DNA of 64,000 nucleotides, taken from contig NW_020845543.1 of the NCBI RefSeq assembly GCF_003704095.1, positions 310,001-374,000 on the forward strand. Reading direction: 5' to 3'. Under the pieces are notes generated by a model, which was given only the letters and a program-made list of their open reading frames with translations, had not been told where the DNA came from and did no database searches. This DNA comes from Pocillopora damicornis. Its lineage: Eukaryota. Each line of letters begins with the position of its first letter. Positions within the stretch are counted from its first letter, which is position 1. The translations under genes were made by a program, and so were the position numbers. Shown here piece by piece: positions 3,256-45,384 of this stretch.

Positions 3256-3825
3256 ATGTATTCGAGGTTCTGGTTGGTAATTGCATTTTTGACTTATCGC
3301 ATTCGTACAAATAAAGTTAGTGGCCAGTGTCACACAGCGGAATACTCTGTGAGAGGAATGTACCTCCGTGGTCACACGTTTAAAAACGTCCAAGTGGAAT
3401 TACATGAGACGTGCTACTTCAAGTGCACGGAAGAAGTCACATGTCAGAGCTACAACTTCGTCATTGGTCTTAACATATGTGAGCTAAACAATCGTACAAA
3501 GGAAGCAAGACCAGAAGATTTTTTGCCAGATGAGATGAGATACTACATGAAGCGTCTTACTAACAGAGGTTGTTATCATGTTGATAGAGAAGTCTTAGAC
3601 ATAAGTTCAAAAAACTTTATTTACCTCTCTTGAGCTTCTGATTTCTCCACTAACTGAGCTATAGAAAGCTTATTGGAGACTTGAGGCTATACACCACGTT
3701 AGTTCGAAAGTATGGGTCTAACTAGGGTAATTTAGTATTATCAACTAAGTTGATAACGTAAATTGGCCACCGTTTCGAGTTTTAAAGCTGACGTTTCGAT
3801 CGTTAGTCTTTCGCTGAATGTTATA

Positions 3826-3862
<37 letters not shown>

Positions 3863-5677
3863 ATAACCCCCTTTATTCTTATGCCTCTTACTATCGAGTT
3901 TGAAGTCCGTTCTGTAAGTTACGGACCGGGTTTTTTCTGCTCGGATTTATGGCCCAAGCTCAACATACGTAAGATATAAATACGAGCAGAAAAAAACCAA
4001 GTTCTATAACTTATAATAGAAACCGAGAAATAAGGTTAGACATTTTTTATATCTGTAGGATCAAATGGAGAGAGAAGATTTCAATTCAAAAAAAAATTCC
4101 AATAATCTATTTTTACGCATTGCAACCCATTCTCTTGTGATCAGTTACGTCTGAGACTGAAGCTAGAGGGCTCAACAGAGATTTAGAAAAGGGACTTCGC
4201 TAAACGATGGTTCAAACGACGAGGGTCAGTCGCTAATTGGTCAGTTCGGAAAGTTTACCAGCAATCTTTCATCTACTTGCGAGCGGATATGTCGCACATT
4301 ATTCATAGATCATTAGAGATGCACAGAACTTCTTCCTTGAGAAGATGACAGTTGCAAACTATCTTTCCGAATTTGCAAATGAATGAATCCCTTCCTCGCA
4401 TGAAAGGCCTTCTACTTAGCCTAATTTTGATAGTTAGGAGGTTTGTAACCCATTCTATTGCTATCGTATAGTACCCCTGGGATCTATCGCCGAGCTTCCA
4501 GCTGAATCGTGCACAGAGGTTAGAGCAAGTGAAGGAAATGATGTGGAAAATACGAAACACTGGATATACTCTGATGAGAAAAGTTTGCCAATAGAGGCTC
4601 TTTGTGAAGGTAATCATATATTATAGTCAGTAACCACAGAAAGGTCTGATCCTAAAGAAATTCTATCACAAAGCTGACGACACGTCATTAGATTTTGGAA
4701 CTGGAAACCTATTGGTCCACTTATTTAAAAACAGCAATTTAGTCAGTTTGTCACCTTATTAGTCGACCTGTCTGTACGTTTAAAGGTCCATCGATTGAGA
4801 ACCTAAGTGTTATAGGGGTATGTAATTTGTCTATAAGTTCTAACAAGTAATTCGATGCAACTAATCGCAAATAATAGTAAATTTTTATAGACTGTCCTAA
4901 AGAGTGCTGCATTAAATATACACCATTGCCCGTCCGATTGGTGTGGAATGTTCCAGTACTGGACTACAATGGACTCACGGTAACTTTATTCAGCAAACAT
5001 CCAAGCTATATCCTTATGTCTACATTCAAACTGTTTATGATTACAAAGTTAATTATTGAAAAAAATAGTAACGCCCACTACTAATAGCCACGTGTTCATT
5101 TCCAGGGGGAGCTAGGTCCTTACCTGATGAAGACCTCAGAAACGTTGATTGTTTTAATTTAAAGTTCTTATTTTTTATCAATTTCATTATAGGTAGCTGG
5201 CAGAAGGTAAATGGTGAATATTCTGTCTGCTTTGGAGCGAAAGATAACCAGTATGGTTCCGTGACAATCCCCAAAAGTGGACGTCTCCGAGCCATGAAGC
5301 TCATCCACAAATCAGGATCGTTACGCTGCAATCGCGTAACTGGCTCATCGTTCTGGGGTTGCACTTACCGTGCATATAATGGAACACTATCGACAATTAT
5401 AACAGATGCTGATAAAAACGCCGTCCTACCTCCTGATGAAGACCTAGAAGGGTTTGATGTCTCACAATCTCACGAATGTGGCACCGAAAAACACTTTTAC
5501 AGTCTCGATGGGACCAGCCACAATTCTACTGTACTGGTTTTTCGCAACCTTTCGAATCCGTTGTCTGTGTCACGCGATCAAGAGTTGCAGATATGGTACG
5601 GGCAAGATCTGAAAGACTGTTCGGAACGTGGGAACAGTGGTAAAACTTGTGTTGATGTGTTTGCATGGTACGAGTAA
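3256..5677 (+). CDS. Secreted PAN/apple-domain protein, paralog 1 (3 exons: 3256-3568, 4472-4609, 5193-5677; 311 aa)
   Basis: Exons join through GT-AG introns in phase 1/1 (936 nt). Hydrophobic N-terminus (MYSRFWLVIAFLTY), then a PAN-type Cys pattern (GMYLRGHTFK...CYFKC...CQSYNF...CELNNRTKEARPEDF...YYMKR). Exon 2 has the PAESCxEV...HWI...ALCE motif seen at the start of fibrinogen/COLFI-like domains. Exon 3 is a Cys-rich domain ending CVDVFAWYE*. Exon lengths match the paralog at 19167-20927. An in-frame upstream ATG lies at 3226. Confidence 0.85.
3724..3879 (-). mobile_element. Penelope-like palindromic repeat, copy A (degenerate hammerhead on minus strand)
   Basis: Shares ttatcaact(c/a)agttgata, aaattggccaccgt, gctgacgtttcga and ccaccgacgcagcaccacagtttct blocks with copies at 24866, 45163 and 60011. 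Lies in intron 1 of PAN paralog 1. Confidence 0.65.
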
Positions 5678-10728: not shown

Positions 10729-10828
10729 NNNNNNNNNNNNNNNNNNNNNNNNNNNNNNNNNNNNNNNNNNNNNNNNNNNNNNNNNNNNNNNNNNNNNNNN
10801 NNNNNNNNNNNNNNNNNNNNNNNNNNNN
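10729..10828. other. Assembly gap (100 N)
   Basis: Run of exactly 100 N; the true gap size is probably unknown. Confidence 0.99.
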
Positions 10829-23641: not shown

Positions 23642-24878
23642 CAAAGCCCGAGTGCAATAGCGATTACTTGTTTTTACGTAAAGGGAAAAATATTTGAGGG
23701 AATCGTATTCGCGCACGATTTCCGCGCGATGAAGCCCTTTAAATGCCGCCAAAAGTGACACAACAGACGTAGCTGACCAACATATTCACTGAACATCTTA
23801 TTCTCAAAATACAATTAACAATGTAACACGGCTTCATTCAGTTAAACTGCAATCAGTAAATTATTGCCGCTAACAGCAAAGAGGCTCAATCAGCATCAGA
23901 TAATCACGCCCTCTTGATTACCAAAAGTTCCCTCGCGTTTAAGAATAAAATGCCCCCTACGTCAGCCAATCAGCATTCAGTTATTTCGCTTCGCATATGA
24001 TAAATAAAAAAACAAATACTCGGTGGCATAAAGAAGACTTGCAAAAAATTGGTCCTTCTCAGTTAACGGAGGGGGATCACCTTAAAGGGGCACTTTTGCG
24101 AAGCGGGTGCTTAATCGACCACTTACAAGATGGCACCAGGTCAGGTGTTCACGAAAACTAAGGAAATTATAAATGATACAGCCAAATTGAGAAATGGGCT
24201 TCTAGTGATCTCTCTCTCCTGTACCTGTTCTTTGACATCCTCAGTGCGTGTCTCACTGTCCAGTATCGGCTTCACACTATCCATAATCCGCGCGCCATGA
24301 AGGAGCATGATACGATCAATATCCTGAGGTACAAGTAGATCAAGGAAGGAAATCGAATTAATAAAATTTTGTGCTCAAATGAAGGACCGTTCCCCAACGG
24401 GCCACTTGTTCTTCTTTGCTTGAATCTACTCCTGGCAACTTTATTATTAAATTTGAGAGATGAACGTACTAACTCTCGAAAACAATTGCATTTCGCACTC
24501 TGATTTAATAGGAAAAATTTTCTATGATCGACCGATTTATTGCGCTTTATCGAGGGGAGGAGTGGATTCAAGGATTCACAATGTGTCCCTCGGTCAAATA
24601 ATATTTGGCAAAAAATAGCCGATGAACGAACTCGCTGCGTCGGAGTAAAACTCCAATGTTAAGTAGTTTAAAATTTGATAAACTTAATCTTGGATTGTGT
24701 AAATTTTGGCAGTTTTTTATACCTCATGCCTTACCCCAAAATAAACCCTAACGCTAGCCTCTAACAACCGGCTGGAGATTACACTGTAACCTAGCAGACG
24801 CCTGTTATTTGTTTTACATCGTATGCAAATGAGCGAAGAAAATACAAGCTGTCCAAAATGGCGAATATAAAGGAAGTA

Positions 24879-24917
<39 letters not shown>

Positions 24918-27900
24918 TATAATCAACTCAGTCGATAAGGTAAATTGGCCACCGTAAAGCGTTGACAAAGGCTAATGCTCGAAACGTCAGCTTTTAAACT
25001 ATTTACGATGGCCAATTTACGTTATTGACTAAGTTGATAATACTAAATTACCCTAAACGATGATTAGCTGAATGAAAAAGTTAGACAAGTATTCAATGTG
25101 ACAAAATCAAAGTAGGGGATATTGACGACCGACGCGGGCTAAATAAAACATACTGAAAGGAACTTTTCAATTACTGACAGAGTTAAAGTCGGACAAAGGA
25201 CATTCCAAAGGCCCCTGTCTGGATTTGAAACCTAGTGATATGACCCTCAATTGTACAATGGATCCTGCAGATTATAGAACCAAATTAACATAGAATATAT
25301 TTCAACTACAATGTTTTCTCTCACGTACGTAATCGAAATTCTTGTCTCAAACGTTTCGAAGGTTGAAAACTCGTTTAAAGGAGGGTATTGATTCGTCTTA
25401 GAGCACAATTCGATTCTACATCTCCTATCTGACACACTTCTACGTGATCAACCACTATTTCGCATCTAAAATTTTCCAAAATTTCTTAGAATGCTAATCG
25501 TGTGCCAATCACTAGCAAATGTCGCGGAAATACTCTTCAAGTCTTGTTTGGATTATGCTGGAAACCGACAGTCAAAGATACAAATAAATCTCCCTGAATC
25601 TAACATACTTCGCTTTTGTCCGAAAGGGCTCATTTCTCAACCCTTTTCTCAACCCTTAACTCAACTTATTTTATGGCACCAAACACTTACAAGGTCACAC
25701 AGTATGTTCAACAACAAATGGCTTCCGCTGAAGTAAACTTAGGTAAGCTTCAGCGGGGATTCCCCTACCCATCACATCTCGTTCACTTTCGTATTTCTCT
25801 TCGAAGAATAAAATTTAATTGAAAAAATAATATTCTTCCCAATTTTTCGTCAAAATCAACGCGATTTCTTAAGTCCAACACTCAGTAACACTATAAGTTG
25901 AAGTAATCTCCTCGAGGAGGAACTGTGAAAAAAAAATAAATGGGTCTATTTATAGATGTTTGTTCCTATTATCGTCTGAGACAATCTGAAACGAAAAGTA
26001 TAAATATCATCACGCAAATCATCACGTAAATCAAGTCATTTGGATCTTAAGCCCGAGGAGGACGAACGGAAAGATCGAAGGACTTCACGTCGTATTCACG
26101 CTAAGACATTCTCTCGCAGAAACAGACCAACACTGCTGAAACATTACATTTATCATTGTCAATTTAGAGGAAACGGAAGAAAAAAGAACTGGTGATAAAT
26201 ATTGCACATGGATGGCTGCAAAATTTTCAGCTGCGTGTTTAATCCAATTTAGATAGTCGTGACCACTACGCCGCTCTCTTGCGTTTGAAATGAAAGGATA
26301 TCATCAAATAATAATTTGTGTTTTAACCTTCTGCATGGTCAAAGTCACCAGCCAAAAAAGTGCGGGATCAAAACACTGTGATGCATTTCGCCACTGCGAC
26401 TGGAAGAAGGCACCCACTCTATTCGTGAAAGTTCCAACACAAAGGGTTGTATGTTCGATGAAGAGCAGCACGGGTGAACCATGTACCATGGACATAAACC
26501 AGATTTTAAAATTACTACCGGCCAGCAGCGATGTCGTGCTGTACTTTGTCACCGACTGTTTAACTCCGACGCAAATTTCTTTTAACAATTCTTTAAACGT
26601 CACCAAGAAAAACATCATATCCTACATGCAGATCATGAGACATTGCCGCATTTCAGTAGAGGCCCTATCTGTCTGGGGGCAAGCCACAGATTTTCGGGTG
26701 TTCTACGCAATGGCGAACACAACTTTAATGGAAACGAACGAAACATTAAAAACTAGCTCACGTCGAGCACTGAAAAACATTGGTTCTCTTGCTATTGACA
26801 ACTCTAACCCGCGAGGCATCCCCAGAATTTTTAGGAAATACGTCTGGCCAAAGATGGCCGAAGTCTCACTTTCCAATTTACAGCTTTCCTCAATCCCTGT
26901 AAACCTAAATAACATCATGCCGCTACTTCAGTCTCTAGAGGTTTCTCACAACAATTTTTCAAGACCACCGCCATTTCCTTGGTGCAACACCACACTTGAA
27001 CTGCCGAGAGGACTGGAGAGAACGCCAACTGCAAATCACCACTATCAATTCGGCACCATCGTTAATCCGAAGTTGTACCGACGATTCTTCGATTTGTCGT
27101 ATAACAACATCGTAGATTTGGCGACCCACGAATTTAAAGGACTTCTAAATGCTTTAAATCTAGAGGGAAATGGACTAAAAGCAGTTGGACCAAAGTGTTT
27201 CCTCGGTTTGAATGGAATACAAGTAATAAACCTAAGAAATAACAAATTGAATGATTTGCCTTCACAATTATTCCAAGGACTCCGAAGTCTCCTGAAATTA
27301 CGACTAGATCACAACAATATCTCGTCTTTACCGATCCAACTTTTTAAAAACCTCACAAACATCAAAAGAATTGACTTAGGAAGTAACAAACTGAGCTTCG
27401 TTCAAAATGAATTGTTCACCAACTTGAAATCTTGTGAAATATTGAATTTAAATGATAATCAAATCACTCTTGTGGATGATGACGCTTTTCCCACCGATTC
27501 AAGTTCTTTGCAAAAGATTAACCTCCAAAACAACAAAATAACGCGGATTCCTTCATCTTTACTCCTGCAACGACATGCTACAGAAATAAATCTGTCATTC
27601 AATGAATTGAATTTTCAAGATCTTAGAAACCTCTTCAAGCAAATAGACTTAAACACGTTTTTGTACCACCATCGTGATACGGCAAGTTCAGTCCGGTTTA
27701 GACTAAAGGAAAGCTTCAATCAAATCAGCTTTGCCTATAATAAATTTTCGAAAATAAACGTCAAGACACTCAACAAAACAGAGATAGGTCTGTTTGAGTT
27801 TCTCCTGCAAATTTATACAATCGACATGACTGGGAACCTCCTGAAGTGTGATTGCGATATCTTGGTTTTGACTCGCTGGCTTCGATCATTGATGCTGAAG

Positions 27901-30900
27901 CATCCGCGTATTCAAAATGTGCACTTTGAAACTTGGAAATGCACGGCTCCTGATGAAGTTAAGGATAAACCTATACTATCTGTACACGAAGACGAGTTCA
28001 AATGCCAGAGAAATCTCAAAAACTGTCCTCAAAGATGTTTGTGTTATGTACGAGCCATGGATGAAGCTGTGGTCATCGACTGCAAAGGAAGAAACCTTAC
28101 TGAGCTTCCTTCCAAGGTTCCAAGAGGTAATCTAGTTCTTCATGCAGAGAACAATAACATCCGGGAGATTCTTCCACATTCCTATTTAGAAAACGTTTCA
28201 GCACTTTATCTCACTGAAAACGATATCCATGTCGTAAACGAGTCCATAGTAAGAAAGTTAACGCAAACTAAAATTCTTTTCATTGATTCGAATAAGCTGA
28301 CCAGTTTACCGCGGAACATTGAAGACGTCAATTTCACCATTCTCGCGATAAACCACAATTTCTTCAAGTGCGACTGTACAACAAAATGGATGAAGTACTG
28401 GTTGCTAAGAGAGTCAAGTAAAATTCAAAACATGGAAAACGTTTTGTGCAACTCCGAGAATGCTCAAGGGAAAGCAATTTACAGCCTACCAGATGATGAG
28501 TTTGTTTGTCAAATTTCTGCCAACGATGATACAAATACGCCGTCCACAACAATGGGTACTGAGTATAAAGTCATCGCTTTGACTCTTGCAGGTGCGCTGG
28601 TTTTGACTTTTATCGTTTTCTTCGTGATTTTCAAGTACCGCGGAGAAATGAAAGTGTTCATGTTCACTCACTTCAACTGGCACCCATTTGATCGCATAGA
28701 CGACTCCGACCCAAGTAAACTATACGATGCGTTTGTGTCTTACAATGGCAATGACCACCGTTGGGTGTCAAACACTTTATGGGACAGACTTGAAAATCAC
28801 GACCCCCCCTACAAACTGTGTGTCCATGACCGCGACTTCCAAGTGGGTAAAACAATACAAGAAAATATTTTCAAGAGCGTCGACCAAAGCAAGCGAATGA
28901 TCATGGTGTTATCCAATAACTTCTTAAAAAGCGAGTGGTGCTTGCTGGAATTCCGCGCCGCACATCGGAAAGTTCTGGAGGAACGTACTAATTATCTAAT
29001 CATCATTTTGCTAGATGACGTGAACATGGACGAGCTTGATGAAGAAATGAAATTATACATGCGCACTAACACGTATCTCAGTGTCAACAACAAGTGGTTC
29101 TGGCAGAGACTGTACTACGCTATGCCTCACATAACAGTCAGGCAAATAAGAGCAAGAAATCTCTCGAATACTCCCTCTAATGTGACATCGCATTCTGTGG
29201 CTCAAAGCGTGTTCACTAATGGGGCATACTCTGTATCTTAACCTTCCCACAAGTGTTTGACATTCAACTCCACCCACAAATTGTTACTTGTTAATAGTCT
29301 AATTGGCAGCTGTTCTTAAGGATATCACGCAACATACCAAGCAAAAGAAAGAGTCACGAAAAATTCCAAAGAACGGCTACGAACGGCCATTAAAATAATT
29401 AAACAGCTCCTTGAAGAGGAGGTATAAAACGGAGGAAAAATTTAAAGCAATAAAGAAATGCTTCAGTTGTCCTTGTTACTCACCAGAATCAGAAAGTAAT
29501 CTTATTCGCGAAACGAAACCAAATTAACTATTCAGACCTTTCAACAATTTACCATACGTAGTGTTCAAGTTTTAAAACATTAATATTGCGTAAATCAATG
29601 TTTATAAAAAGATGAATTTCATATAATATCTTTCCCTCAACTGATTCGAAATTCAAACGACTTCTTGATTATTGTTGGGGTCTTTATGTTGGCGTTTTCT
29701 TGAAAATTACATGTCAAGAGTTTAGCGTATGAAACCAAAAGGTTTGGTTTAATCACCCGAGTGAAGTTTGTTCTATTTTCAAACCATTCCCCTACAGTAA
29801 TGTACTGTTGGTAGTTTATTTTAAGAAACATTGTGAATTTGTAAGTCGTGCACTGTATCTAACTATATCAGCGACAGTTAGAAAAAACGTTTTCTAAGTA
29901 ACAACAGATAAACACAGTAGATTAATTTTGTATGCGTATCACTTACGTTTGCGGAACAATGCAGACTACTTATAAAAATAAACAAAAGCGTAAGAAATTA
30001 TCAAAAAAACTTGACTTATTGACTGAGTGGTAGGGTCGGTCGGGAATAAGTTTGGCCGTCGCTCATTTTTTTTTCCCTTTCTTCTTTTAGCTCGCGAGGC
30101 AGTATAGCTTCTGTACGGCCCTTGCACACCATGGCGCACGGCCCTCATACGGGTATTTCTGTACAATTTTTTGATAACGGTTCAATTTAGTTCATAAATA
30201 CCTTTAATGACAAAGCAAGCTTGGTCAAGAAAGTATTTTTCATATCAAAGAACTGCTAATTACCTCACGCCCTGACAACAGATTCCTCATCAGACCCAGC
30301 GTTTTCATCGTCACTTGTGTGTCTGGATCATCAAGAAGGCTGCAAAATGAAAACAAAAAGCTTATATTTTTTTATAGCCTACTTGCAGTGGTGTGAATTG
30401 AGAAAAAACAAGCTGTACATACATACATTGAAAAACGAAGTCACTAAATTGCACGAGAAGAAAAACCTTGGTGTGATGGCGATCAGATCTACTGAGGTTT
30501 AAAGCAGAAAGAGGCACTCTCTAGTTTGTAGAGCTATATTTTATTGCTTTTCTGAAAGAAAGCGAATCTGATACGGGTCGAAAATTGTTCTACTGCTCCA
30601 ACTATTACACATGACTTCTTTTAGACCTTTTCACAAGTTACCAACCTGAACAGCTGCTCGGGTCCCAACACTTCAAGGATTTTATTTTTAGTTCCTTCAT
30701 CTGCTTGGTAAGCCATATTCTACGAAGTGTAACAAGAGAAAAAACACCTTGTTCATCGCTCGAGTTAATCACATGGCGGGATATTAGCGAGTTCTCTTAT
30801 GAACTTAAACTGCGTTGTACGTTGGACTGCACTCCCAATAAGGAGAAAAGAATAGTGATAATTCATAAATCTTACCATTAGAGCCCAAACCCCGTTCAAT

Positions 30901-33900
30901 CGCAGTGCAGTTTCTGAGCGCCTGGTTAAATTTGACAACAAGTTGACGGCTCCTGCTTCTAATATGGGCTGAAATAGAAAGTGAAAATACAGTTACTATT
31001 TCAACATTTTACTTCTTGAGTGGCACTGTAAGGGTGCTTGTTAAATGCCAGTTCACATTCACGATGACCTTGCTCACAATCCACATATGAGCAAGACTCT
31101 CTCCACCCATGAAGATAAAGGGGAACCAAGAACTAACAGGTACACTGAAAAAAATCTTAGGAGCGAGGGGGGAGAGGGGGTAAAATTTAACTGTAATAGA
31201 TTTGCACCCCTCATAGGAGGAATAGCAAGACTCCCAGTGGCGTCATGCCACAGGAACCATGATAAGTTCTAGCATAGTGGGCCATTTGGTTCGTACGACA
31301 TCTCAACGTTTGGTGTGTCAAGTCATGGCCTTGATTTGATTGACTGATTTATTTCGCAAGAAAATATTTACAATAATTATACGTGAATAATATATGTTTT
31401 TTTTCGTATTCCTGGCAAGGAAGCTCATTTGGAAACCATGGGGCTCTTGACAATGAGCTCCCCACTCACATAGATCAAAAATAAAGTTATCATGCGTGGA
31501 CTACTATTAACAAAACATAATTAAGATAAAAAGGAACGAAAAATGACTGTTCAAAAAGAAAAATACACAAAAACACAAACACAATCACACAAAAAGCACG
31601 CGTGCAGACAGACTAAAGACAAAAAAACAGCAAATTATATTTACTTGAAGAGAATCAGGAAAGGAGCAATACTCGTAGATTTAAAACGAGAGACGGTAGG
31701 GGTACTTTGTATATTGTGGTTAAAAGAATTAAGTACTTTTGGTGCCTGAAATTTTATGGCAAACCGTCTTATATTAATTCGAGCATAAAATAACCAACAG
31801 ATATCAGAGTTTGTAGTATTGTTCGAATAAATTTGATTCAAATTGTAAATAAAAATATTTCTATAACTACATTAAGAAGAATGGCTATTTTATATAGAAA
31901 CACAAACTTGGCAAATTGAAATAAATATCAGGAAAGTTTAATATTTGTAAGTTCTTAAACAAAGAAAAAAGGATAAGTATGAACATGGAATGGCTTTCGT
32001 TGAAATTATTCTACTAATTTCCTCCTGAAATATGACAATGCACTTTGAGTTTGTGGGATAAAGTACCCAGACAGTGATGGTTCGATGAACGTGTATTGAC
32101 TAGGCTATAACTTCCATATTTACCTCTTTACTGGGAGAGAATTCCAGCAACAGATTACAGAGTGCAGAGGAGGCCACAGTCATCATGTTATCATTGGCGT
32201 CCTGAAGTAATTTCATAATGGGCTTCCAAACCGCCGTGTCCTGGAAACTAGTTCTTAACTGTTGCACAGAACGCGACAGGCTGTGGAGACACTTCACTGC
32301 AGCTAACTTGACATTTGTGTTGGGATCCTCTAGACCGGACACCACGTGATCCATGGTGCATTCGATATCAATAATCTGCAGAGCAATTCATGTCGTTCAA
32401 TCTAATACACTTTCAAACATTAACAAACGGTTACAAGGAAGAAAATAAGAGAGTCGGCTCCCGAATCAAAAACATATCTTGAAGAACCTTATCTTGCAGA
32501 AGAGCTTAAATCTTGTTCACTCCCAAGATCTTGTCAGTAATTCTCCTTATTGTCTGCCATACAATAATTGTGACATTGGTTAAAAGAATTTAGTATTGGA
32601 TCACCTGATAAAACCCTATTTGATATTTTTGTCTATCCTCATTCCTTGTCAGCTTGATTTTGTATTGATTTAATAAGGGGAAATTCTGTCTTGATCACTC
32701 AAGGGAGTTAGGCGGCCAAAAGAACTTTTGTCACCTTTTTCCTGATGTCTTCATCGTTTGCGCCAACAGAGGCAAGAGCTTTGAATGCACTCTATAAAAA
32801 ATGAATAAATAGTTACATAAAAATAATAACAATAATAACAAATACAGTCGAACCCGTATTTAGCGGCACGGTATTAAGCGGTCAGTTGTCAAAGTCCCGA
32901 AGTGGAATTTTCTGCAACTTTAAACTGTAATTTTCACCTTAATTAGGCGGTCACCTCTTTCAAGCGGTAGCGGTAACCCTCTGCAAGTGAGGCTCGCCGC
33001 TAGTGGAAAAGGTTCTCGTGGGCAGAGACTAGAGATGTACGCGTCCATCAGTCGCTTACAAGAAATTGAGTGGCAAACTCGAGGTTTGAAAAGGAAGTAT
33101 GCGTACGTGAAGACAAATTTAACACTTAAATATGGCTCTGTGATCATTGCAGGGAAAACTTTGAATGTACTTTACCCTGGATTAAACTTCTGAAACCTTA
33201 TGCAACCCTACACTGTTTCAAGAAGAATAACAACCTGAGAAAGGCTGCCCTCCCCATTTCTCCCCCACTCTTCCCCTGCCCGTATGTGGTTATACCCACC
33301 TCTCTCATGAGAGCGTAAGAGCTGTCGTCCAAGTCACTTTTGACCAAGAAGCCAGTTAGCGTTTTAATCAAGTGATCAGAAATGGCTGCCGTCCTCTGCA
33401 GCTCTGTGTCTTCTTCAATGAGGAATGCTAAAAGAATTGGCGAATCAAATAGTGGACTCTTAAAGGCAGTTTCATACACTAACCTGTATCTGTACCAAGA
33501 ACTATTGTTTGAATGGTCCAGTGGACCAACATAAATAGCAATTTTTTAATATAACAATTCTCAATTGAGTGTCGAAAGTAATCAAGGATTAAATTGGTTT
33601 AACTTTTCTACGCCCTCTGATTGATTCAGGAAACTCGCGCTATCCTCTCAACTAATCAGTTTCAAAACCAAAACCAATCGCGGCCTCAACACACGCGTTT
33701 TCCCGCGCTTTGAGCAGTATGCTTTCCATTATCAATTCTCATTGGCTCGTTGTGATATTTTCCTTTCCTCTGATTGGCTGTTGAATTGCACTCTAACCCG
33801 CTAACAGGACTGTGTTTTCTTTTAAGTATTAAAGTAATTGGGTTTCAACCCCAATTTTCACACCAGTTCTCCTAGAATCAAAACTCTTTGAGGCAATTGT

Positions 33901-36900
33901 AGTGTGAGTGTTGAATAACAAGTTGATTGAGGAAAAAAATGTCCTGGATCGAGCCTGAAAGAGGGTCATCTTTATGTGTTCTTAGGTAGAACACTAATTT
34001 ATAACAGCGCATTTCTCTCTCTCTCTCTCATGATGACTATAAAAACTGTCAGCCGAGGGAAACCTGGCAACCTACATTATCCTATTGATAAATCTACATC
34101 AATTCTGTCTGGAAATGTTCCTAGTAACTGCATGCTACATACCCTAGGATGAACTAAGGCACTGTATGTCATTTGCCTCTCAAACAGAAACACAAGGTTG
34201 AACTTTTCATTGTGATCAATGAGTTAAATGCAAAATTTCAATATAAACCATTACCTCTACCCTTACAAAAAAAAAAAAACGATTTCATCAAAACTAACCT
34301 AATGTCTCTGCTGCCTCAGCTCTGACGGTGAGGTTTTTGTCCAATTTACACATTCTGACCACTGTGGCAAGAACCTTAAAAAGTAATCACTCACTTGTAT
34401 TGTGTTGACATCATATTTACCAATTATAAATGGAGGCAAAAATAATTCAACCCACTGAATTGCAGAAAGGAGTCAGAACTGCCATCACACCTTCTTGATA
34501 GTACATACGTATTTCTTGTACATTTATTTGTGTTCAGTGTTTTAAAAACTCACGGTCATGTAGTTTATGCTCTGTATGTACAGTATAAATCATTGTACAC
34601 CATGATCTATCAGAATGTTGGAAGCAGAGACATTTGAATTGAATCTAATCCCTTCAAGAGAGACACAAGAACTCCATAAGCTACACAATTTCAATAACAG
34701 ACACCCTTTCCTTCCAAATCAACCAAGACTCTAAAAAATAACTTGACAAGGAACAAGAAATATTGGATATTTTTCCAAGGCTACCCAAGTGAGACAAAAC
34801 ACTGTGACAGGTGCACATACAATGTACTGTAGGCAAGAAAACAAACATCCTTTCATCCCTCTCAATGAGAGTCCCCTCCCCTCCCCTCCCTTCAAACAAT
34901 ATACTACAGGGCCCAGTTGTTTAAAGGCTGATTGGCACTAACCCAGACTTAAATTTCATCCAGGTTTCTATATTTCTTTGTTCAAAAGCCATTTAGGAAG
35001 AATATTCCCTATTCTTTTAGACCATCCAATGACCAAATTGCAAGCAAAAATGATTTGAATTGAATTTTCTTTTAAAGCTTTCAGACCTGAAATCAAATTT
35101 CACCCTAACCCTGGGTTATCTTAACCCAGCTTTGAACAACCCAGGCTAGGAATCGAAGTGAGAAGATAAGGCTGAAAACTGAAGTTAGGTTCAATGAGTA
35201 ACAACATGACTGCAAGTAGGTCTATACACACCTTGATCAGTAGCGCATGATGTTCTGCTGCTGGTACTGCCCCTGCCCTGTGCATGTTTGTCAAACTGCA
35301 ATGTACAGTGTACATTAATTTCTTAAATTAGTCAGAGAGACAGAAACTCAAATAATTCATTCAAACAGCATAACTGCACCATGTACGTACAGTTAAAGGA
35401 TACCGTTAAGAACATGTTGATAGAAAGACAGATTGAATTTCAAGGACCCAGAAAGGCAAAAGGGATTACATGGACAGATAGATTGACTGACAAGCAGACA
35501 AACAGATAAACAGCCAGAAAGAAAGATGGATTGGACCAGCAAAAATAAAAGAATTTAGGAAAGGCACATAAGCACGCAGTTTGGTAGACAGACAAGCAGG
35601 TGGGTAGAGAGATAGACAGATGGATGAAAAGATGGAAAGAGAGACTGGTGGACACAAAGAAACAAAGACCACATCAAAAACAGATGGAAGGAAGGAAGGA
35701 GTAAAAGACACTACAAACAGACAGTTGGATGATCAGATAGATACCCACCACTTTGCAGCTCCAAGCTGAATCTCATCGGGTCTGTCTCTTGACAGCAGCT
35801 TAGTAAATATTTGAACCAGCTGCTCACCTTGATGTGTTGCTTTGGGTTTGCAAAAAATAGCCAAAAAATTGAATTAAGAACAAAAAATGTGTTATGCTTT
35901 TACACTCTTGCAGTACTGTACAGTGATAAAGGCTGTTTGTAGCAAAAGTTGAACCTGAAAGAATTTCTCCTTAATATATCATTAAAATATCGAGCAGACA
36001 AGTGATGAAAATAAAGAAAAATATCAATTAGGGAATTATACATGTATGTATGTTGATCCAATATCAAATTCTCCAAACTAACATTACAAGAACTGTATGG
36101 CAGACAGAAAGGAGAATTAGTAATGAGATCTCATGAGTTAAAGGCCAGTTAAGTGGCACCCTATTTTAAGCAGTTACCCTGTACTACAGAAAGCAGAAAG
36201 TTTCCCCTTAATCACTGTAATTTTCACCTCTATTAGGCAGCCACCTCTATTAAATGGTCATGGTCACCCTTAATTAAGTCCCAACTGCCTATTTTTATTG
36301 TCTTCTGCTTGTATTGAATGGTCACTGAAAGAATAACTATTCGGCGATGAGTAATTTTTAATCCTTGTTCCTCTCTCAAAATTAAAGTACCAGTAGTATT
36401 TTGGAGAAAGATTCTGTACAATAAATGCTCAATTATGGCATAAAGCGGCATTGTTTACCACTTTTTATAACACCTCTAATCTGTGGAACTCCTGTTAAGC
36501 GGTCAACCTGTATTAAGCAGTGGCCCTACCATTCCCTGTGGGTGACTGCTTAATACAGGTTTGACAGTAATACACCTTTAAATAGTACATAAAAAAATTA
36601 GGTTGTTAATATCAATTTTCTGGTCATTACCTGACTTCATAGCAATTGACACAGCCCCATTTTGAAATGACATAGATGCATAGCACTGAAGTGCTGGCTG
36701 TTGTATCTTGGGAATATCACAGACCAAAAGTGGCAGTAAGGCTGTGACAGCTCCCATATTACATAACAAAGCCTGATGTGCTGGACCCTAAAAGTAAAAT
36801 GTAATTGAATGTTAACAAGAGATGAAATGTCCTCCACAGAAAATGTACCTGACAAAATGCAATTTTTACTTTCAATTAAAACTCAAGCTCCTAATTTACC

Positions 36901-39900
36901 CCTTTCCCAAGAAATTTTTTTAAGCTATTCTCTTCAGACAGGAAAATCTGAGATGAGTCAGGGAGAGGTTTGCCAGGGGCTGGCATTTTTCATTTTGAGA
37001 TATTTACTTCAAAGGTAAGAGTAGATTAAAAACATTTCAGCCAAGTTGTAAGTCAGAGTTTTGATTCAAACATGAAAGTAATGGACTTTCTTCATGATGA
37101 ACATTCTCTCACATTATGATTGCAGAATGGCACAAAAACACTATGATAGGTGTTCACCTGGATACAAGCTAAGAGCCAACACTCTGCACAGGCCTCATGC
37201 AGAGCATAAAGCAGGCCACAGCTACACTGTAAAGATTCCTGGAGTTGCATTTTTTGTTGTAATCAATTTAAAATTGCATATCATATTTAATCCTGTTTCA
37301 CTTGTTTCTTTAAATAACTACTTTTCAGGTAATTTAGAGCTTTGAGTGAAAAACATAGGAACAGCTCAAGAAATATAAGGTGTATTTATTGGAAAGTACC
37401 AATCATAGAAATTTAAACAGTATATGCTGTAACAATCTCTGTTTACCTGACAACATTTGGATAAGATTGCTGCAGCTCCCTCCGCATTAGACAAAGAACT
37501 AGACAACAGGTCGACAAGCTGTGGTACTATGCTTTGATCCTGAGAATTAAGTCAAATAATTATAAAAAATTTTTGTAAAGTAACATTTAATGTGACATGC
37601 AATATAATAAAAACTACAAAACACAATCGAAAAACAAACATGAGTTGGGAGAATTTAGTTAGTTGGAGTAATTTTCACAATTTATACACTCACAACTGTA
37701 AGTGTTAGATCTTGGATGCACCACAGAAGATCCATGAGTGAGTGTTTGCCTTAAAATTGTAAATTATTGCATCCTGCTTATAAAACATTCTTGCTTAAGT
37801 AAATTTAAGAGACCTCCACTCTTCCAACTTCATTAAGACCTCACTTATCAATTGGGTACTTCTTGCATGAACCATGGAAAAAACTCCAGATTTCTTTCCT
37901 TTTCTTTTAATAATTTGTCTTTACTCTTCACACTTTTTGGGAGTCTTGAATCTCAGTTTGAGTTATTAATGAGATTAATACAGGAATCAGTTGTAGATGA
38001 AGAGTACACAATCCGAATAAAACTTTGCAATTTTACATCTACACTACGAAACAGAAAAGATAGGGAGGCATATACTCTAAACAAACTAACCTCAATGACT
38101 GGTACACATGAAGATTCATAGACTGTCCTCAGTGATCTGACAGATGCTTCAACAACTCGAGAATCTGAATGACAAATTCCTGCCACAACAATAAACAGGC
38201 AAGGGCTTACTCATACATACACCCCATCGAGATAAGACTGCATTCTTGTAGAGATCATTTATTTGGTACAAGTAAATTTTTTTTCAGTAAAATGTGTCCA
38301 GTATGACTCAGTACCATGGAGTCAGGCATTGGCTTTGCTTTTCATCCCAAGATCTGATTCTTAATTCTCCCCTCTAGCAACTAAACATTTTCTTGTAAAT
38401 ATTACGTAACAAGAGTTTGGTACTACTGCTGTAGATCAAGATGACAGCTTCTACCTGATAAGTTTAAGTATTCTCATTACCTGTTTGCTGGATAATGTAT
38501 GGATATTACAGGGAGAAGTTGTATGTTAATCACTTCAGGGAATGAAAAATTAACCACTGACTCTTAGAAGTTAAAAAATGTTACAGCCAGCAACTTGACT
38601 GCTGAACAAAAGTTCCAAAGTGGCCAATTACACTGTTACTTTAGTTAACAAATGTTTTGTTGTTGACATGGTGACCAAAAGCAGATACAGGAGCCCTGCA
38701 TTGTTTACATGCATAACCACCCAAGTTGGTTCAGTCAAGATAGCTAGATGAAGGCCATTTTTACATTCTTTAATGAGTTTTTATGGGCCAAGACATTACA
38801 GGTCTAAAATTTAAACACCTCCAAAAAAATAGACGTAATGGAGCAAATATCCACACACATTTTGCAGTTCCTTGATTGCTGTTTAAAACTGTTGGAAATT
38901 TTTTTCTTGTAGGAAAAAAAAAATTCCCCCCACAAGCTACTTACAAAGTAAACCAACCAGCTTTGAGAATTTTTTTCCCAGCTGAATAAAGGTGAGCAAT
39001 CCTAAAAGGACTGGATGGCTGTAACTGGCCAAAGGATTTAATTTAGCTTTACCTTACCCAGTTAGGAAATCATTTATGTATTTATCAATAAATTACATGT
39101 ACTATAACCTTACATCTTTAAAAAGATGGTTAATGTTTCAACCAAGAATACTTGTTTCTGTTAATCTGATACATGTATTTGTCTGATTCGTTAACATTAG
39201 CTCATCACAGTGAAAGACAATTTACTACATAAGAACCAATAATTATAACAACTTACCTTTTAAGAACACATCCAGAGATTTTGCATCTATAAGAGCTTGG
39301 ACATTCTCAGCTGAACCTGTTAACCAAAAAAAAATGGGAATAAAAGGAAAATCAAAGCAGTATAATCTAAAATACAATAAATACTGATTCTGGATTATAC
39401 CCCCAAACTCCCAAAGCTCTAATTGTATAGGGAATATAAATATCAATTTTAGAGTGGAAATTGTTGGTAAGCCCTACCTCTTGCCAGACTCCCTAACAGT
39501 ACAACTGACTCCACAACAAAGTCAATCCCAGTATCATCTTGCATAAGTAGTTGAAGTATCTTTGGTATAATATCAAGTCTGATGAATGAGGATTTCTTTG
39601 CCTTATTACCAATGACAGCATTCTTTATATTACTGCAATGACAGAAAATAAATGATCCCAGGGCAATCAATGGGCATTGTATATAAGAGAATAGTGGCTC
39701 CTGTTGCTGAGGAGGTTTAACCTGCTATATTTCAATCAATACTCTAAATTTACATGGAAAATATTTTCTTGTTATTGGTACATGTGCTTTAATATTCATT
39801 CTCCTACTACAATATCTATTTATTAAGCCCATCAAGAAAGCCTCCACAATGGTTTCAAATATATTTTTGATTATCATTTTGATTGTGTGTGTCCACAGTT

Positions 39901-41015
39901 AAGATAGAAACAAATTAACATAGTTTTTTTACACACAGATATAATTATCACATACTGTACATTACCCTGTGGAATAATTTAAAGCCTGGGATTTGGACTT
40001 ACGTGGAGAAGAACTAAACTGGGAAGAATGATTACAAAATGCACTTAAATCAAATGATCTGTTAACTTGAAAAAATAAAAAGGTGCAGCTTGACTTTGAG
40101 AAGTTTTAAGTTTTTTTTTGTGACAGACCCACACAGACTTATCAGCCTTCGCAATGTCATTTTGAATCAGTCCTTCGCGGATTTCTAGATCATTCTGCAC
40201 CTCTTGTGAGATAAGAGGTGATACAGCAGGTGGTGAAAATAGTTATATAATAATTATAATGGGGCTGAACTAATTGAAAAGGGCTTCTTCAGTCAGCATT
40301 AAAGGCTACACAAAAGTTTACTAGAATTGGGAGTAGCTTTAAAAACTATAAGGATTCCAGTACTGAGGGGCAGTTTATTTGGGACCATGGGATCACAAGA
40401 GCATTTAGTGACTTCCCCATTAAATGTAAGATCGTGTCGCTAAAGCTTTAGTCTTTGTAACCTGTGATATATATAATTGTAACCACAACAGTATAGACAC
40501 TGATGCAAGACTATGTAAGAACATAGATGTTTAAATCTAGAAACAATAAAAAGATAAAATTTTAGGGTAAAAATTCAGACAAATGCAAGAGATGTTTGCT
40601 ACATGCTGTCCTAAAATATATATGAGTAAGCTTCTGTAGCTTAACGACGAGCTTGAGTTGTAGATTAATTGTGTGAGTAAATAGACAATTACGACTTCGC
40701 CGGAATTTGTTAACCGCAGAGCAGAAATAAAAAATAACACTCTGTTACTAAGAGAATATCTTCATGGAACTCCAGAAGGTAACATTTAAGCTTACATAAC
40801 CCACAACAATAAATTTACGAGAGCATAAAAAGTCACTGATCTTACGTTACGGCTTGAAGTCTGTCATCGTAATCAGAGGAGGAAAGGTTATTTACAAAAA
40901 CTTCGTCCGTGTCCGGCTCCTAGAAGAAACGCCTCACTGAGTAAAGCATTTGGGAAATATACTGCAAGTTCAAATATCAGTAGCCTTAGCTTACCGTAAA
41001 TACCGGCATTTTCAT
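22123..41015 (-). CDS. ARMC8: Armadillo repeat-containing protein 8 (GID5/CTLH E3 ligase subunit), 19 exons, ~650 aa
   Basis: Minus-strand exons, all GT-AG and phase-consistent (1953 nt): 41015-40995, 40919-40846, 39632-39478, 39316-39257, 38179-38091, 37539-37447, 36787-36631, 35839-35749, 35295-35232, 34374-34299, 33427-33300, 32791-32735, 32375-32124, 30968-30876, 30719-30646, 30339-30264, 24323-24225, 23521-23259, 22153-22123. Recognisable ARMC8 peptides: [71 protein letters not shown]. Minus-strand AATAAA at 22074-22079. Confidence 0.95.
22280..22500. repeat. Degenerate ~17-bp tandem array (aagcc(c/t)ctctctccaa), probably the subterminal repeats of a DNA-transposon relic
   Basis: About 10 imperfect units following a taccgtaa start, in the last ARMC8 intron. 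Confidence 0.7.
24866..25054 (+). mobile_element. Penelope-like palindromic repeat, copy B (degenerate hammerhead)
   Basis: Inverted arms aaattggccaccgtaaa / tttacgatggccaattt surround ttgacaaaggctaatgctcGAAACGTCagc. Lies in ARMC8 intron 16, ~1.2 kb upstream of the TLR start. Confidence 0.7.
25755..25765. promoter_or_regulatory. Perfect palindromic NF-kB (kB) site GGGGATTCCCC
   Basis: Exact match to the classic MHC class I/p50-type kB palindrome, ~525 bp upstream of the TLR ATG. An IRF-like GAAAGTGAA (minus strand, 25782-25790) lies 16 bp away. Confidence 0.65.
25988..26006 (+). promoter_or_regulatory. Putative TLR core promoter: IRF-like GAAACGAAA plus TATA box TATAAATA
   Basis: GAAACGAAA at 25988-25996 and TATAAATA at 25999-26006, ~285 bp before the ATG. 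Motif match only. Confidence 0.45.
26290..29241 (+). CDS. TLR: Toll-like receptor, multi-cysteine-cluster (Toll/mccTLR) type, intronless, 983 aa
   Basis: Signal peptide; LxxLxLxxN repeats; LRRCT ([12 protein letters not shown]); internal LRRNT (CPQRCLC..IDC); further LRRs; second LRRCT ([11 protein letters not shown]); TM ([21 protein letters not shown]); TIR with box1 YDAFVSY, box2 [19 protein letters not shown] and box3 FW. AATAAA at 29449-29454. Lies wholly inside ARMC8 intron 16 (24324-30263). Confidence 0.96.
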   Translation: MKGYHQIIICVLTFCMVKVTSQKSAGSKHCDAFRHCDWKKAPTLFVKVPTQRVVCSMKSSTGEPCTMDINQILKLLPASSDVVLYFVTDCLTPTQISFNNSLNVTKKNIISYMQIMRHCRISVEALSVWGQATDFRVFYAMANTTLMETNETLKTSSRRALKNIGSLAIDNSNPRGIPRIFRKYVWPKMAEVSLSNLQLSSIPVNLNNIMPLLQSLEVSHNNFSRPPPFPWCNTTLELPRGLERTPTANHHYQFGTIVNPKLYRRFFDLSYNNIVDLATHEFKGLLNALNLEGNGLKAVGPKCFLGLNGIQVINLRNNKLNDLPSQLFQGLRSLLKLRLDHNNISSLPIQLFKNLTNIKRIDLGSNKLSFVQNELFTNLKSCEILNLNDNQITLVDDDAFPTDSSSLQKINLQNNKITRIPSSLLLQRHATEINLSFNELNFQDLRNLFKQIDLNTFLYHHRDTASSVRFRLKESFNQISFAYNKFSKINVKTLNKTEIGLFEFLLQIYTIDMTGNLLKCDCDILVLTRWLRSLMLKHPRIQNVHFETWKCTAPDEVKDKPILSVHEDEFKCQRNLKNCPQRCLCYVRAMDEAVVIDCKGRNLTELPSKVPRGNLVLHAENNNIREILPHSYLENVSALYLTENDIHVVNESIVRKLTQTKILFIDSNKLTSLPRNIEDVNFTILAINHNFFKCDCTTKWMKYWLLRESSKIQNMENVLCNSENAQGKAIYSLPDDEFVCQISANDDTNTPSTTMGTEYKVIALTLAGALVLTFIVFFVIFKYRGEMKVFMFTHFNWHPFDRIDDSDPSKLYDAFVSYNGNDHRWVSNTLWDRLENHDPPYKLCVHDRDFQVGKTIQENIFKSVDQSKRMIMVLSNNFLKSEWCLLEFRAAHRKVLEERTNYLIIILLDDVNMDELDEEMKLYMRTNTYLSVNNKWFWQRLYYAMPHITVRQIRARNLSNTPSNVTSHSVAQSVFTNGAYSVS
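31330..32095 (-). mobile_element. 5'-truncated L2/CR1-group LINE relic
   Basis: Minus strand shows decayed RT C-terminal peptides ([16 protein letters not shown].., FKNLQILNF.., [24 protein letters not shown]), then a 3' UTR ending in aataaa and (tcaa)-like repeats near 31330-31355. Confidence 0.65.
32507..32710 (+). mobile_element. piggyBac-type MITE
   Basis: Internal blocks (taattctcctta, aatttagtattggatca, aaattctgtctt, gggagtt) shared with 41527-41737. Confidence 0.65.
32843..32990 (+). mobile_element. Tc1/mariner-type MITE fragment
   Basis: Starts ta-cagtcgaacccgtatt with repeated tattaagcggtcac subterminal motifs. Related sequence at ~36150-36570 and ~43670-44300. Confidence 0.55.
34909..35146. 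mobile_element. MITE with GGCCCAGTTGTT-type terminal inverted repeats (PIF/Harbinger-like)
   Basis: Imperfect TIR pair gggcccagttgtttaaag ... ctttgaacaacccaggc. Superfamily assignment is an inference. Confidence 0.6.
35420..35745. repeat. Degenerate purine-rich (GACA/GATA/GGAA)n simple repeat
   Basis: Strong strand purine bias with gaca/gata tetramers, in the ARMC8 intron between the exons at 35749 and 35295. Confidence 0.8.
36150..36570. mobile_element. Tc1/mariner-type MITE
   Basis: Ends cttaatacaggtttgacagta, the complement of a ta-cagtcaaacctgtattaag-type TIR. Internal tattaagc repeats. Confidence 0.55.
38341..38553 (+). mobile_element. piggyBac-type MITE
   Basis: cccaagatctgattcttaattctcccctctag ... 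ttctacctgataag ... gggagaagtt ... ttaa. Shares blocks with the 14941, 32507 and 41527 copies. Confidence 0.6.
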
Positions 41016-41526
41016 GGTGAAAACGAATCATATACATGTACCACAACTCTTTGCTACGTCAGCAGCTATAATCGAAGGCTCGCTAATAATAATGCGGTCT
41101 CCGTCGTGTAAAAAACCACCAAGAGTCCTTGCCCTCTCAAGAGCGCTGTAAAATTGGTGTCTGAACATTTAGCGTAATTTTCAACTGATAACCATTAAGG
41201 ACCAGGGCCCCATTTCTCGAAGATCCCGGTAACTTAATGGCCCAAAGCAATGTTTTAAAGTTAAAATTTTAAGATTATAGAGGCAGGTTTTGGCACTCTA
41301 ACAAGTCAAATTTTTTAAACTGATAGATATATTGCAGAGTTTTCAAACTTTTTAAACTCCCATTTTGAAAGAAAACAGAACATCTTTATGGGCCTGTTCA
41401 GTTACCGGAACCTTAGAGAAAACCACTGCCTTACATTATTCATCCCAGAGGATGAGGAGGAGTTTTGAGGGAATCACAAGGTTTTCAGGGGGAATGAGGC
41501 AAGGATCAGACATCACCAACAACGTA

Positions 41527-44992: not shown

Positions 44993-45162
44993 TTTTGGCT
45001 ATTTTATCACGTAAATAAGGGGAGGTTTGCCACAGTTTCCACCGCGGAACACCCGCTGAACTACTCTGTGGGCTCATGCATGCAGATGAGGCTGAAGGAA
45101 CACCACCGATTTGGGCGCGTATTTCACATGCAGTAGTTTGGCTGTGATGTTCACAACTGAGT

Positions 45163-45384
45163 AAAGGGGGTAAGTTTCTAAGGAAACCGTGGTGCTGTGT
45201 CGGTGAGAGAGCATGACAGGGTAATTTGGTATTATCAACTCAGTTGATATCGTAAATTGGCCACCGTAAAGAGTTTAAAAGCTGACGTTTCGAGCCCTTT
45301 GTCATTCACTCTGACGAAAGCTAAACGCTCGAAACGTCAGCTTTCAAACTCTTTATGGTGGCCAATTCACGTTATCATCTCAGT
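45163..45384 (+). mobile_element. Penelope-like palindromic repeat, copy C (best-preserved hammerhead core)
   Basis: Long hairpin: aattggccaccgtaaagagtttaaaagctgacgtttcgagc pairs with gctcgaaacgtcagctttcaaactctttatggtggccaatt. Located ~170 bp upstream of the TRMT112 ATG. Confidence 0.75.
45308..45341 (+). ncRNA. Minimal type I hammerhead ribozyme motif (imperfect copy)
   Basis: act-CTGACGA-a-agc taaac gct-c-GAA-AC-GT-C-agc. It has both catalytic boxes (CUGANGA 45311-45317; GAAA 45331-45334), a short stem II, a palindromic loopless stem III (ACGT) and a GUC cleavage triplet ending at 45338. The G-C pair at the base of stem II is lost in this copy. Confidence 0.6.

Follow-up and report, generated by a model that had tools for sequence, protein, structure and literature searches.

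Does an immune receptor gene that lies inside another gene on the opposite strand simply share its address, or does the expression of one gene bear on the other? The question is raised by a locus of the stony coral Pocillopora damicornis (NCBI RefSeq assembly GCF_003704095.1, contig NW_020845543.1, positions 310,001 to 374,000 of the forward strand; this stretch of 64,000 nt is called the window here, and positions are counted from its first base). In the window, a complete Toll-like receptor (TLR) gene lies within an intron of ARMC8. An initial annotation of the window had described the TLR as intronless and antisense to its host, and had proposed that its induction could alter ARMC8 output. 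The locus is an opposite-strand nested gene pair, with the coordinates originally given. We favour a reading in which the nest has persisted passively and its two genes are largely independent, and we assign this reading as a whole a probability of about 0.8.

A TLR gene enclosed by an intron of ARMC8

The 983-aa open reading frame of the TLR (26290-29241, plus strand) is enclosed by a 5,940 nt intron (24324-30263) of ARMC8, the exons of which are read from the minus strand. On the donor side, the ARMC8 exon that ends with ..LLSGRE has its last base at 30264 and is followed by gt, while on the acceptor side ag precedes the exon that begins with DIDRIM.., the first base of which is 24323. The intron has GT..AG boundaries and is in phase 0, and its position is exactly as the initial annotation had it. 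The sole run of N in the 64 kb window is at 10729-10828, and the intron contains none. It had also been described as the largest intron of the gene, and this holds for the mapped part of ARMC8, where the remaining 14 gaps between exons are 159-1,152 nt long (exon ends approximate). Subtracting the 3,977 nt TLR transcription unit from the 5,940 nt leaves 1,963 nt, and the intron is probably the largest because a gene unit of approximately 4 kb sits in an otherwise ordinary intron of approximately 2 kb.

Contigs from two RNA runs of different studies (X16, a polyA library, and X17) and from two DNA runs (X1 and X14) were aligned to the 6,000 letters from 24294 to 30293. As such contigs carry no strand, expression level or true ends, strands were deduced from reading frames, which place the TLR on the plus strand and the ARMC8 exons on the minus strand. 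In each RNA run, one contig leaves out exactly 5,940 nt, and the segment left out is bounded by CT..AC on the plus strand and hence by GT..AG on the minus. This joint was found in both RNA runs (2/2) and in neither DNA run (0/2), and it is the splice from 30264 to 24323 on which the initial annotation had staked the nesting.

Both RNA runs also contain a TLR contig, one of 4,011 nt from X16 that is colinear with 26031-30007 and one of 4,132 nt from X17 that is colinear with 26106-30220. As the two contigs are colinear with the window apart from small indels in the 3' untranslated region (UTR), the TLR mRNA is unspliced. Leaving aside 28 unplaced letters of one contig, the guest unit is entirely intronic. 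It has its own promoter-like TATAAA (25999) and AATAAA polyadenylation signal (29977) inside the intron, as had been claimed, and the two motifs fit the ends of the X16 contig. The ARMC8 donor at 30263 is 256 nt past the TLR polyA site at approximately 30007. The stretch was found in 20 of the 24 public runs listed, six of which are RNA runs, from four studies, that contain 0.52-0.58 of the sampled words.

The X16 and X17 RNA comes from a genotype or sister species other than the assembled coral. Dozens of single-base differences from the assembly, spread over 26227-29876, are common to both runs, and both have an 8 nt insertion after 29429, in the TLR 3' UTR, and a difference at 29887.

As ARMC8 splices across the whole TLR unit, the two mRNAs share no exon sequence. 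Splicing of ARMC8 from 30264 to 24323 removes that unit along with the intron. In the independent nest that we favour, ARMC8 pre-mRNA synthesis would run antisense through the TLR unit, and TLR transcription would head towards the ..LLSGRE exon. The pair has probably been kept together passively, since an intronic guest is hard to move without damage to its host, and any collision of polymerases would be incidental, with no designed switch behind it.

The receptor and its host

By its predicted domains, the TLR is a canonical receptor with leucine-rich repeats (LRRs), a transmembrane (TM) segment and a TIR domain. Its ectodomain matches Pfam LRR_8 (1.2e-29, in four stretches) and LRR_4 (7.9e-10), and its TIR domain matches Pfam TIR (8.3e-18, residues 812-915) and TIR_2 (2.3e-18). 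The N-terminus is hydrophobic, and there is one strong hydrophobic segment at approximately residues 760-782 (mean of 2.8 over 19 residues), which all eight top hydrophobicity windows overlap; these values come from the Kyte-Doolittle scale. Two cysteine clusters of the form CxC..C..C were identified, an internal one at C520/522/551/572 and another at C694/696/720/740. Between them is an LRRNT-like cluster (C579/583/585/598) that is followed by further LRRs; the LRRNT match at residues 578-611 scored 23.5 bits, under the Pfam cut-off of 25.8. Receptors of the multiple-cysteine-cluster, or protostome (P), type have two or more C-terminal cysteine clusters in the ectodomain and an internal LRRCT-LRRNT pair, and the predicted layout is of this type. 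The name (P-type or mccTLR) was taken from PMC6043800, where it is applied to coral receptors.

A total of 85 proteins match the window TLR at E <= 1e-20. It is 85% identical to 'protein toll-like' of Stylophora pistillata and falls in the same 90% cluster as Pocillopora verrucosa XP_058941837.2, also named 'protein toll-like'. Full-length orthologues are present across stony corals, and an alignment of 16 of them has a mean column identity of 63%, which we take as a sign of constraint on the TLR. Many members of the cluster are shorter, at 968 aa instead of 983 aa, as they would be if translation began at the second methionine (residue 16); this bears on 26290-26337 of the window.

Four LRR+TIR loci were found in the whole assembly (234,350,878 bases in 4,393 contigs), the window TLR included. 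The small number agrees with the scarcity of canonical TLRs in anthozoans that the initial annotation had stated and that is described in PMC6043800. One of the other loci is an intact single frame in contig C2824 that is 40% identical to the window TLR, and the remaining two form an inverted pair in contig C667 in which each copy is split over two frames; the split may result from a frameshift, a short intron or decay. The C2824 and C667 loci fall in a clade separate from the nested TLR. In a crude look, made without gene models, at open frames within 8-10 kb of these loci, the neighbours were single-exon frames and the duplicated inverted pair, and there were no obvious host exons.

The host gene was identified as ARMC8, as originally proposed, from matches that run in order along the armadillo repeats. 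Two of its exons on the minus strand match chain E of PDB 7nsc (7nsc_E, 'Isoform 2 of Armadillo repeat-containing protein 8') at 9.3e-32 (chain residues 372-452) and 1.5e-25 (563-649). A protein search with one exon peptide retrieved long ARMC8-like proteins. When four such proteins, full-length or long, were compared with the window by tblastn, 16 colinear exon matches were returned, extending from 39628 down to 23243. The exons were each searched singly, and their ends are approximate where they were taken from tblastn. At least three coding exons lie 3' of the host intron (24323-24225, 23521 to approximately 23257, and a tiny one near 22150). As a GT after ..NLFE ends the exon at 23257-23521, it is not the last of the gene, and the putative last exon lies approximately 1.1 kb beyond it. 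ARMC8 is a subunit of the CTLH/GID ubiquitin ligase (PDB 7nsc; PMC8567238), which is the role that had been ascribed to it here. The coral protein is the predicted homologue of Gid5, a scaffold subunit of that complex; membership of the complex and docking of GID4 are known for the human protein.

Table 1. Features of the nested locus and other TLR loci of the assembly (window positions unless a contig is named)
Feature	Position	Strand	Basis or remark
TLR coding sequence, single exon	26290..29241	+	983-codon open frame
TLR transcription unit, approximate	26031..30007	+ (from open reading frame)	unspliced RNA contigs; 5' UTR ~260 nt, 3' UTR ~770 nt
TATAAA	25999..26004	+	27 nt 5' of first aligned base of X16 RNA contig
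AATAAA polyadenylation signal	29977..29982	+	25 nt ahead of end of X16 polyA-library contig
ARMC8 host intron	24324..30263	-	5,940 nt, GT..AG, phase 0, gap-free; removed in X16 and X17 RNA contigs
ARMC8 exon upstream of host intron (ends ..LLSGRE; 25 residues)	30264..30339	-	splice bounds; tblastn; metagenome identity
ARMC8 exon downstream of host intron (begins DIDRIM; 33 residues)	24225..24323	-	splice bounds; tblastn
Next ARMC8 exon, ends approximate	23257..23521	-	matches human ARMC8 residues 563-649 in 7nsc_E
Probable final coding exon of ARMC8, tiny (..VKTALQQFT, stop)	22123..22153, approximate	-	likeness to C-termini of P0104 and P0095
Thirteen mapped upstream ARMC8 exons; N-terminal exon(s) outside the mapped set	30636..39628	-	tblastn
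Dispersed palindromic repeat copy, ~190 nt	24867..25055	.	inside host intron, part of neither gene
Other TLR locus L002	C2824:343832-346522		intact single frame, 958-983 aa; 40% identical to window TLR
Other TLR loci L003-L006	C667:31354-33946 and 38727-41326		inverted pair; each split over two frames

The TLR-ARMC8 linkage in a second coral lineage

When a profile made from the alignment of 16 TLR orthologues was used to search metagenome contigs, 30 loci were returned. Ten of these (L009-L018), from four taxa, belong to the orthogroup of the window TLR. A 47-row tree places the window TLR with that of Stylophora, then with a clade made up of Oculina and the metagenome species, and then with Desmophyllum. 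Profile searches of genome contigs and of viral contigs with the same TLR alignment revealed no relative.

Five loci of the orthogroup (L009, L013, L015, L016 and L017) are from one species, with coding sequences that are at least 99.5% identical to one another, and the TLR of this species shares 62% identity with the window TLR at the protein level and 72% at the DNA level. In L013, L015, L016 and L017, the ..LLSGRE exon of ARMC8 was found on the strand opposite the TLR, 1,519-1,522 nt past the TLR stop codon. All 25 of its residues are identical to those encoded in the window (25/25), and it has the same AG/GT bounds. These four contigs, which are four different records, are all of the contigs in the orthogroup that have at least 1.6 kb of downstream flank (4/4). 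The other six loci have downstream flanks of 0-1,554 nt, too short to show the exon. The start of the exon was not found at the end of L011, from a third species, the 1,554 nt flank of which stops at about the point where the exon would begin, and no ARMC8 exon was found at L019-L038, the loci outside the orthogroup, where flanks are short and therefore uninformative.

As judged from these contigs, linkage of the TLR to ARMC8 appears to be common to at least two stony-coral lineages within one orthogroup. The TLR would be fully enclosed in the other coral too if ARMC8 is intact there, as the ..LLSGRE exon is an internal one. The suggestion that the intron could serve as a synteny anchor for the TLR can be retained in part: in a second scleractinian lineage an orthologue does lie by the same ARMC8 exon and in the same relative orientation, and the exon on the other flank was seen in none of the ten loci.

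No conserved non-coding block was found when the window was compared with L015, L009 and L013; only the coding sequence, two ARMC8 exons and a single 32 nt match to a repeat aligned. In the two longest metagenome contigs, the ARMC8 exon that precedes the ..LLSGRE one was found as well, at a distance of 3.6 kb. The intron between these two exons, 296 nt long in the window (30339-30636), spans approximately 3.6 kb in L013 (6038-9696) and L015 (6969-11437), and the sizes of ARMC8 introns differ widely from lineage to lineage.

Independence or coupling of the two genes

Several points weigh against an independent nest inherited by more than one coral. The RNA joint is anchored by 29 nt, just below our caution mark of 30, as only 30 nt of exon was included on each side of the intron, and the X16 TLR contig opens, before 26031, with 28 letters that match nothing in the 6 kb stretch and that may stem from an assembly artefact or from a short leader exon located elsewhere. 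No DNA contig covers the whole intron; near 24.9-25.0 kb the pieces break at the repeat, and none of the contig pieces listed covers 25911-26008. As the four metagenome contigs that carry the ..LLSGRE exon are from one species, they represent one additional lineage and not four. None of the ten orthogroup loci (0/10) showed the DIDRIM exon, though the longest upstream flank, 3,337 nt in L009, exceeds the 1,967 nt that separates this exon from the TLR in the window. Finally, the independence of TLR and ARMC8 expression is assumed.

Some of these points would be explained if a chimeric contig or collapsed repeat had placed the TLR in the ARMC8 intron artificially, and the intron does contain a high-copy palindromic repeat (24867-25055) at which independently assembled contigs break. 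However, an X14 DNA contig that begins past the left end of the 6 kb stretch and extends to 24900 joins the DIDRIM exon to 577 nt of the intron, while the X17 contig, which reaches 30220, extends from the TLR to a point only 43 nt short of the ARMC8 donor. The four independently assembled contigs of another species, in which TLR and ARMC8 exon have the same linkage and orientation, give the strongest independent support. With these linking contigs and a gap-free intron, a misassembly is highly improbable and was rejected. The absence of introns from the TLR, together with its location in an intron, could alternatively mark it as a decaying retrocopy, as both features are seen in many retrocopies. 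Against this, the 983-codon frame is intact and the order of domains is complete, expression of the gene is seen in RNA runs of four studies, the TATA box and AATAAA fit the contig ends, 85 proteins match, and full-length orthologues are present across stony corals. The other intact TLR locus, in C2824, is likewise a single open frame, so a lack of introns is the norm for the family in this genome. A dead retrocopy was therefore also rejected, and we give this explanation next to no credence.

Functional coupling of the two genes is a more substantial alternative. Here, TLR transcription would run head-on into that of ARMC8, and immune induction would lower the amount of full-length ARMC8 or favour transcripts that end within the intron. 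The geometry fits, as the TLR polyA site at approximately 30007 is so close to the ARMC8 donor that read-through would cross the ..LLSGRE exon. Were this exon to be read into the intron on the ARMC8 strand, seven residues (VISSSLI) would be added before a stop codon, and an ATTAAA is present on the minus strand at 30208. Interference and intronic polyadenylation caused by nested genes are known elsewhere (PMC13309782, PMC3192792, PMC5174743), and the arrangement has been retained in a second coral lineage. However, conservation of a nest is expected even if it has no function, and no non-coding block conserved between the window and the three metagenome contigs compared with it was found. In addition, mammalian nested pairs are reported that show no divergence in expression despite interference (PMC8467205). 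The spliced ARMC8 contig and the TLR contig coexist in both RNA runs, which shows only that the two are not strictly mutually exclusive in bulk tissue. We therefore consider coupling unlikely. A more elaborate version, suggested by analogy with the human protein, is a conserved switch in which TLR induction would lead, via collision or read-through, to an ARMC8 that lacks its last ~130 residues and would be present in the ligase without docking GID4. Pathogen sensing would then re-aim a ubiquitin ligase. This version strikes us as distinctly more doubtful than coupling in general.

The precedent for the switch is a human ARMC8 with a short C-terminus, which enters the GID/CTLH complex and cannot recruit GID4 (PMC8567238). 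The human form, ARMC8 beta, is produced by alternative splicing and ends at residue 385, whereas a coral protein cut short at the host intron would end near position 529 of the 7nsc chain, which has 659 residues. No C-terminally truncated coral ARMC8 isoform was seen. The proposal that nested transcription shortens the host transcript has a counterpart in H13/Mcts2, where host transcripts are polyadenylated within an intron as a result of nested-gene transcription (PMC13309782). There, the mechanism has been shown experimentally and is reportedly controlled by DNA methylation at the promoter of the nested gene, whereas for the coral pair it is conceivable only.

Nests of genes on opposite strands are described as the commonest overlap between protein-coding genes and typically involve short genes in long introns (PMC5174743, PMC8467205). 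Those reported from Drosophila, mammals and Caenorhabditis elegans (PMC5174743, PMC8467205, PMC12274878) resemble the coral locus in that a short, intron-poor gene with its own promoter and polyadenylation signal occupies a long intron of the host, and in that the host splices across its guest. The coral case differs from them in the pair of genes involved, a TLR in ARMC8, and in phylum. It is therefore a new, well-supported example of a known arrangement and an ordinary kind of overlap. We found no paper that describes a TLR inside ARMC8, though coral annotation records or gene tables (e.g. PMC6208414, PMC10236652) may show it. Human ARMC8 is partly host to another gene, NME9, the only such case mentioned in a paper on ARMC8 synteny (PMC6680376).

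The closest counterparts of the receptor are Nv-TLR of Nematostella and the P-type coral receptors, which, like the window TLR, have LRRs, a TM segment, a TIR domain and more than one cysteine cluster in the ectodomain (PMC6043800). Nv-TLR and the window TLR are also alike in that each is among very few such genes in an anthozoan genome (PMC6043800). The likeness described is one of architecture, and no Nematostella sequence was identified among the matches to the window TLR. Ligand-dependent signalling via MyD88 to NF-kB has been reported for Nv-TLR (PMC6043800).

Canonical TLRs are very few in stony corals, and if the ARMC8 intron after ..LLSGRE served as a fixed and easily recognised address, it would offer a practical means of distinguishing true orthologues from paralogues of this receptor in coral genomes, and an aid in dating its arrival at this position. 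The locus also offers a clean natural setting in which to test whether a housekeeping host is disturbed by an inducible immune gene through which it is transcribed.

The host intron was also scanned with Rfam, which revealed no small RNA gene and no hammerhead at E <= 0.1; the only matches were sub-threshold ones to miRNA hairpins, and they fall on the palindromic repeat. The arms of this repeat are 53 nt long and 83% complementary. It belongs to the family of an element at 45163-45384 that had been described as a repeat bearing a hammerhead. Further copies are present in the window at 3723-3876, 45162-45375 and 60025-60110, and at least 2,673 first-look candidates were found genome-wide, 40 of which were scored, giving 85 matches. 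Very many RNA and DNA contigs pile up on the repeat.

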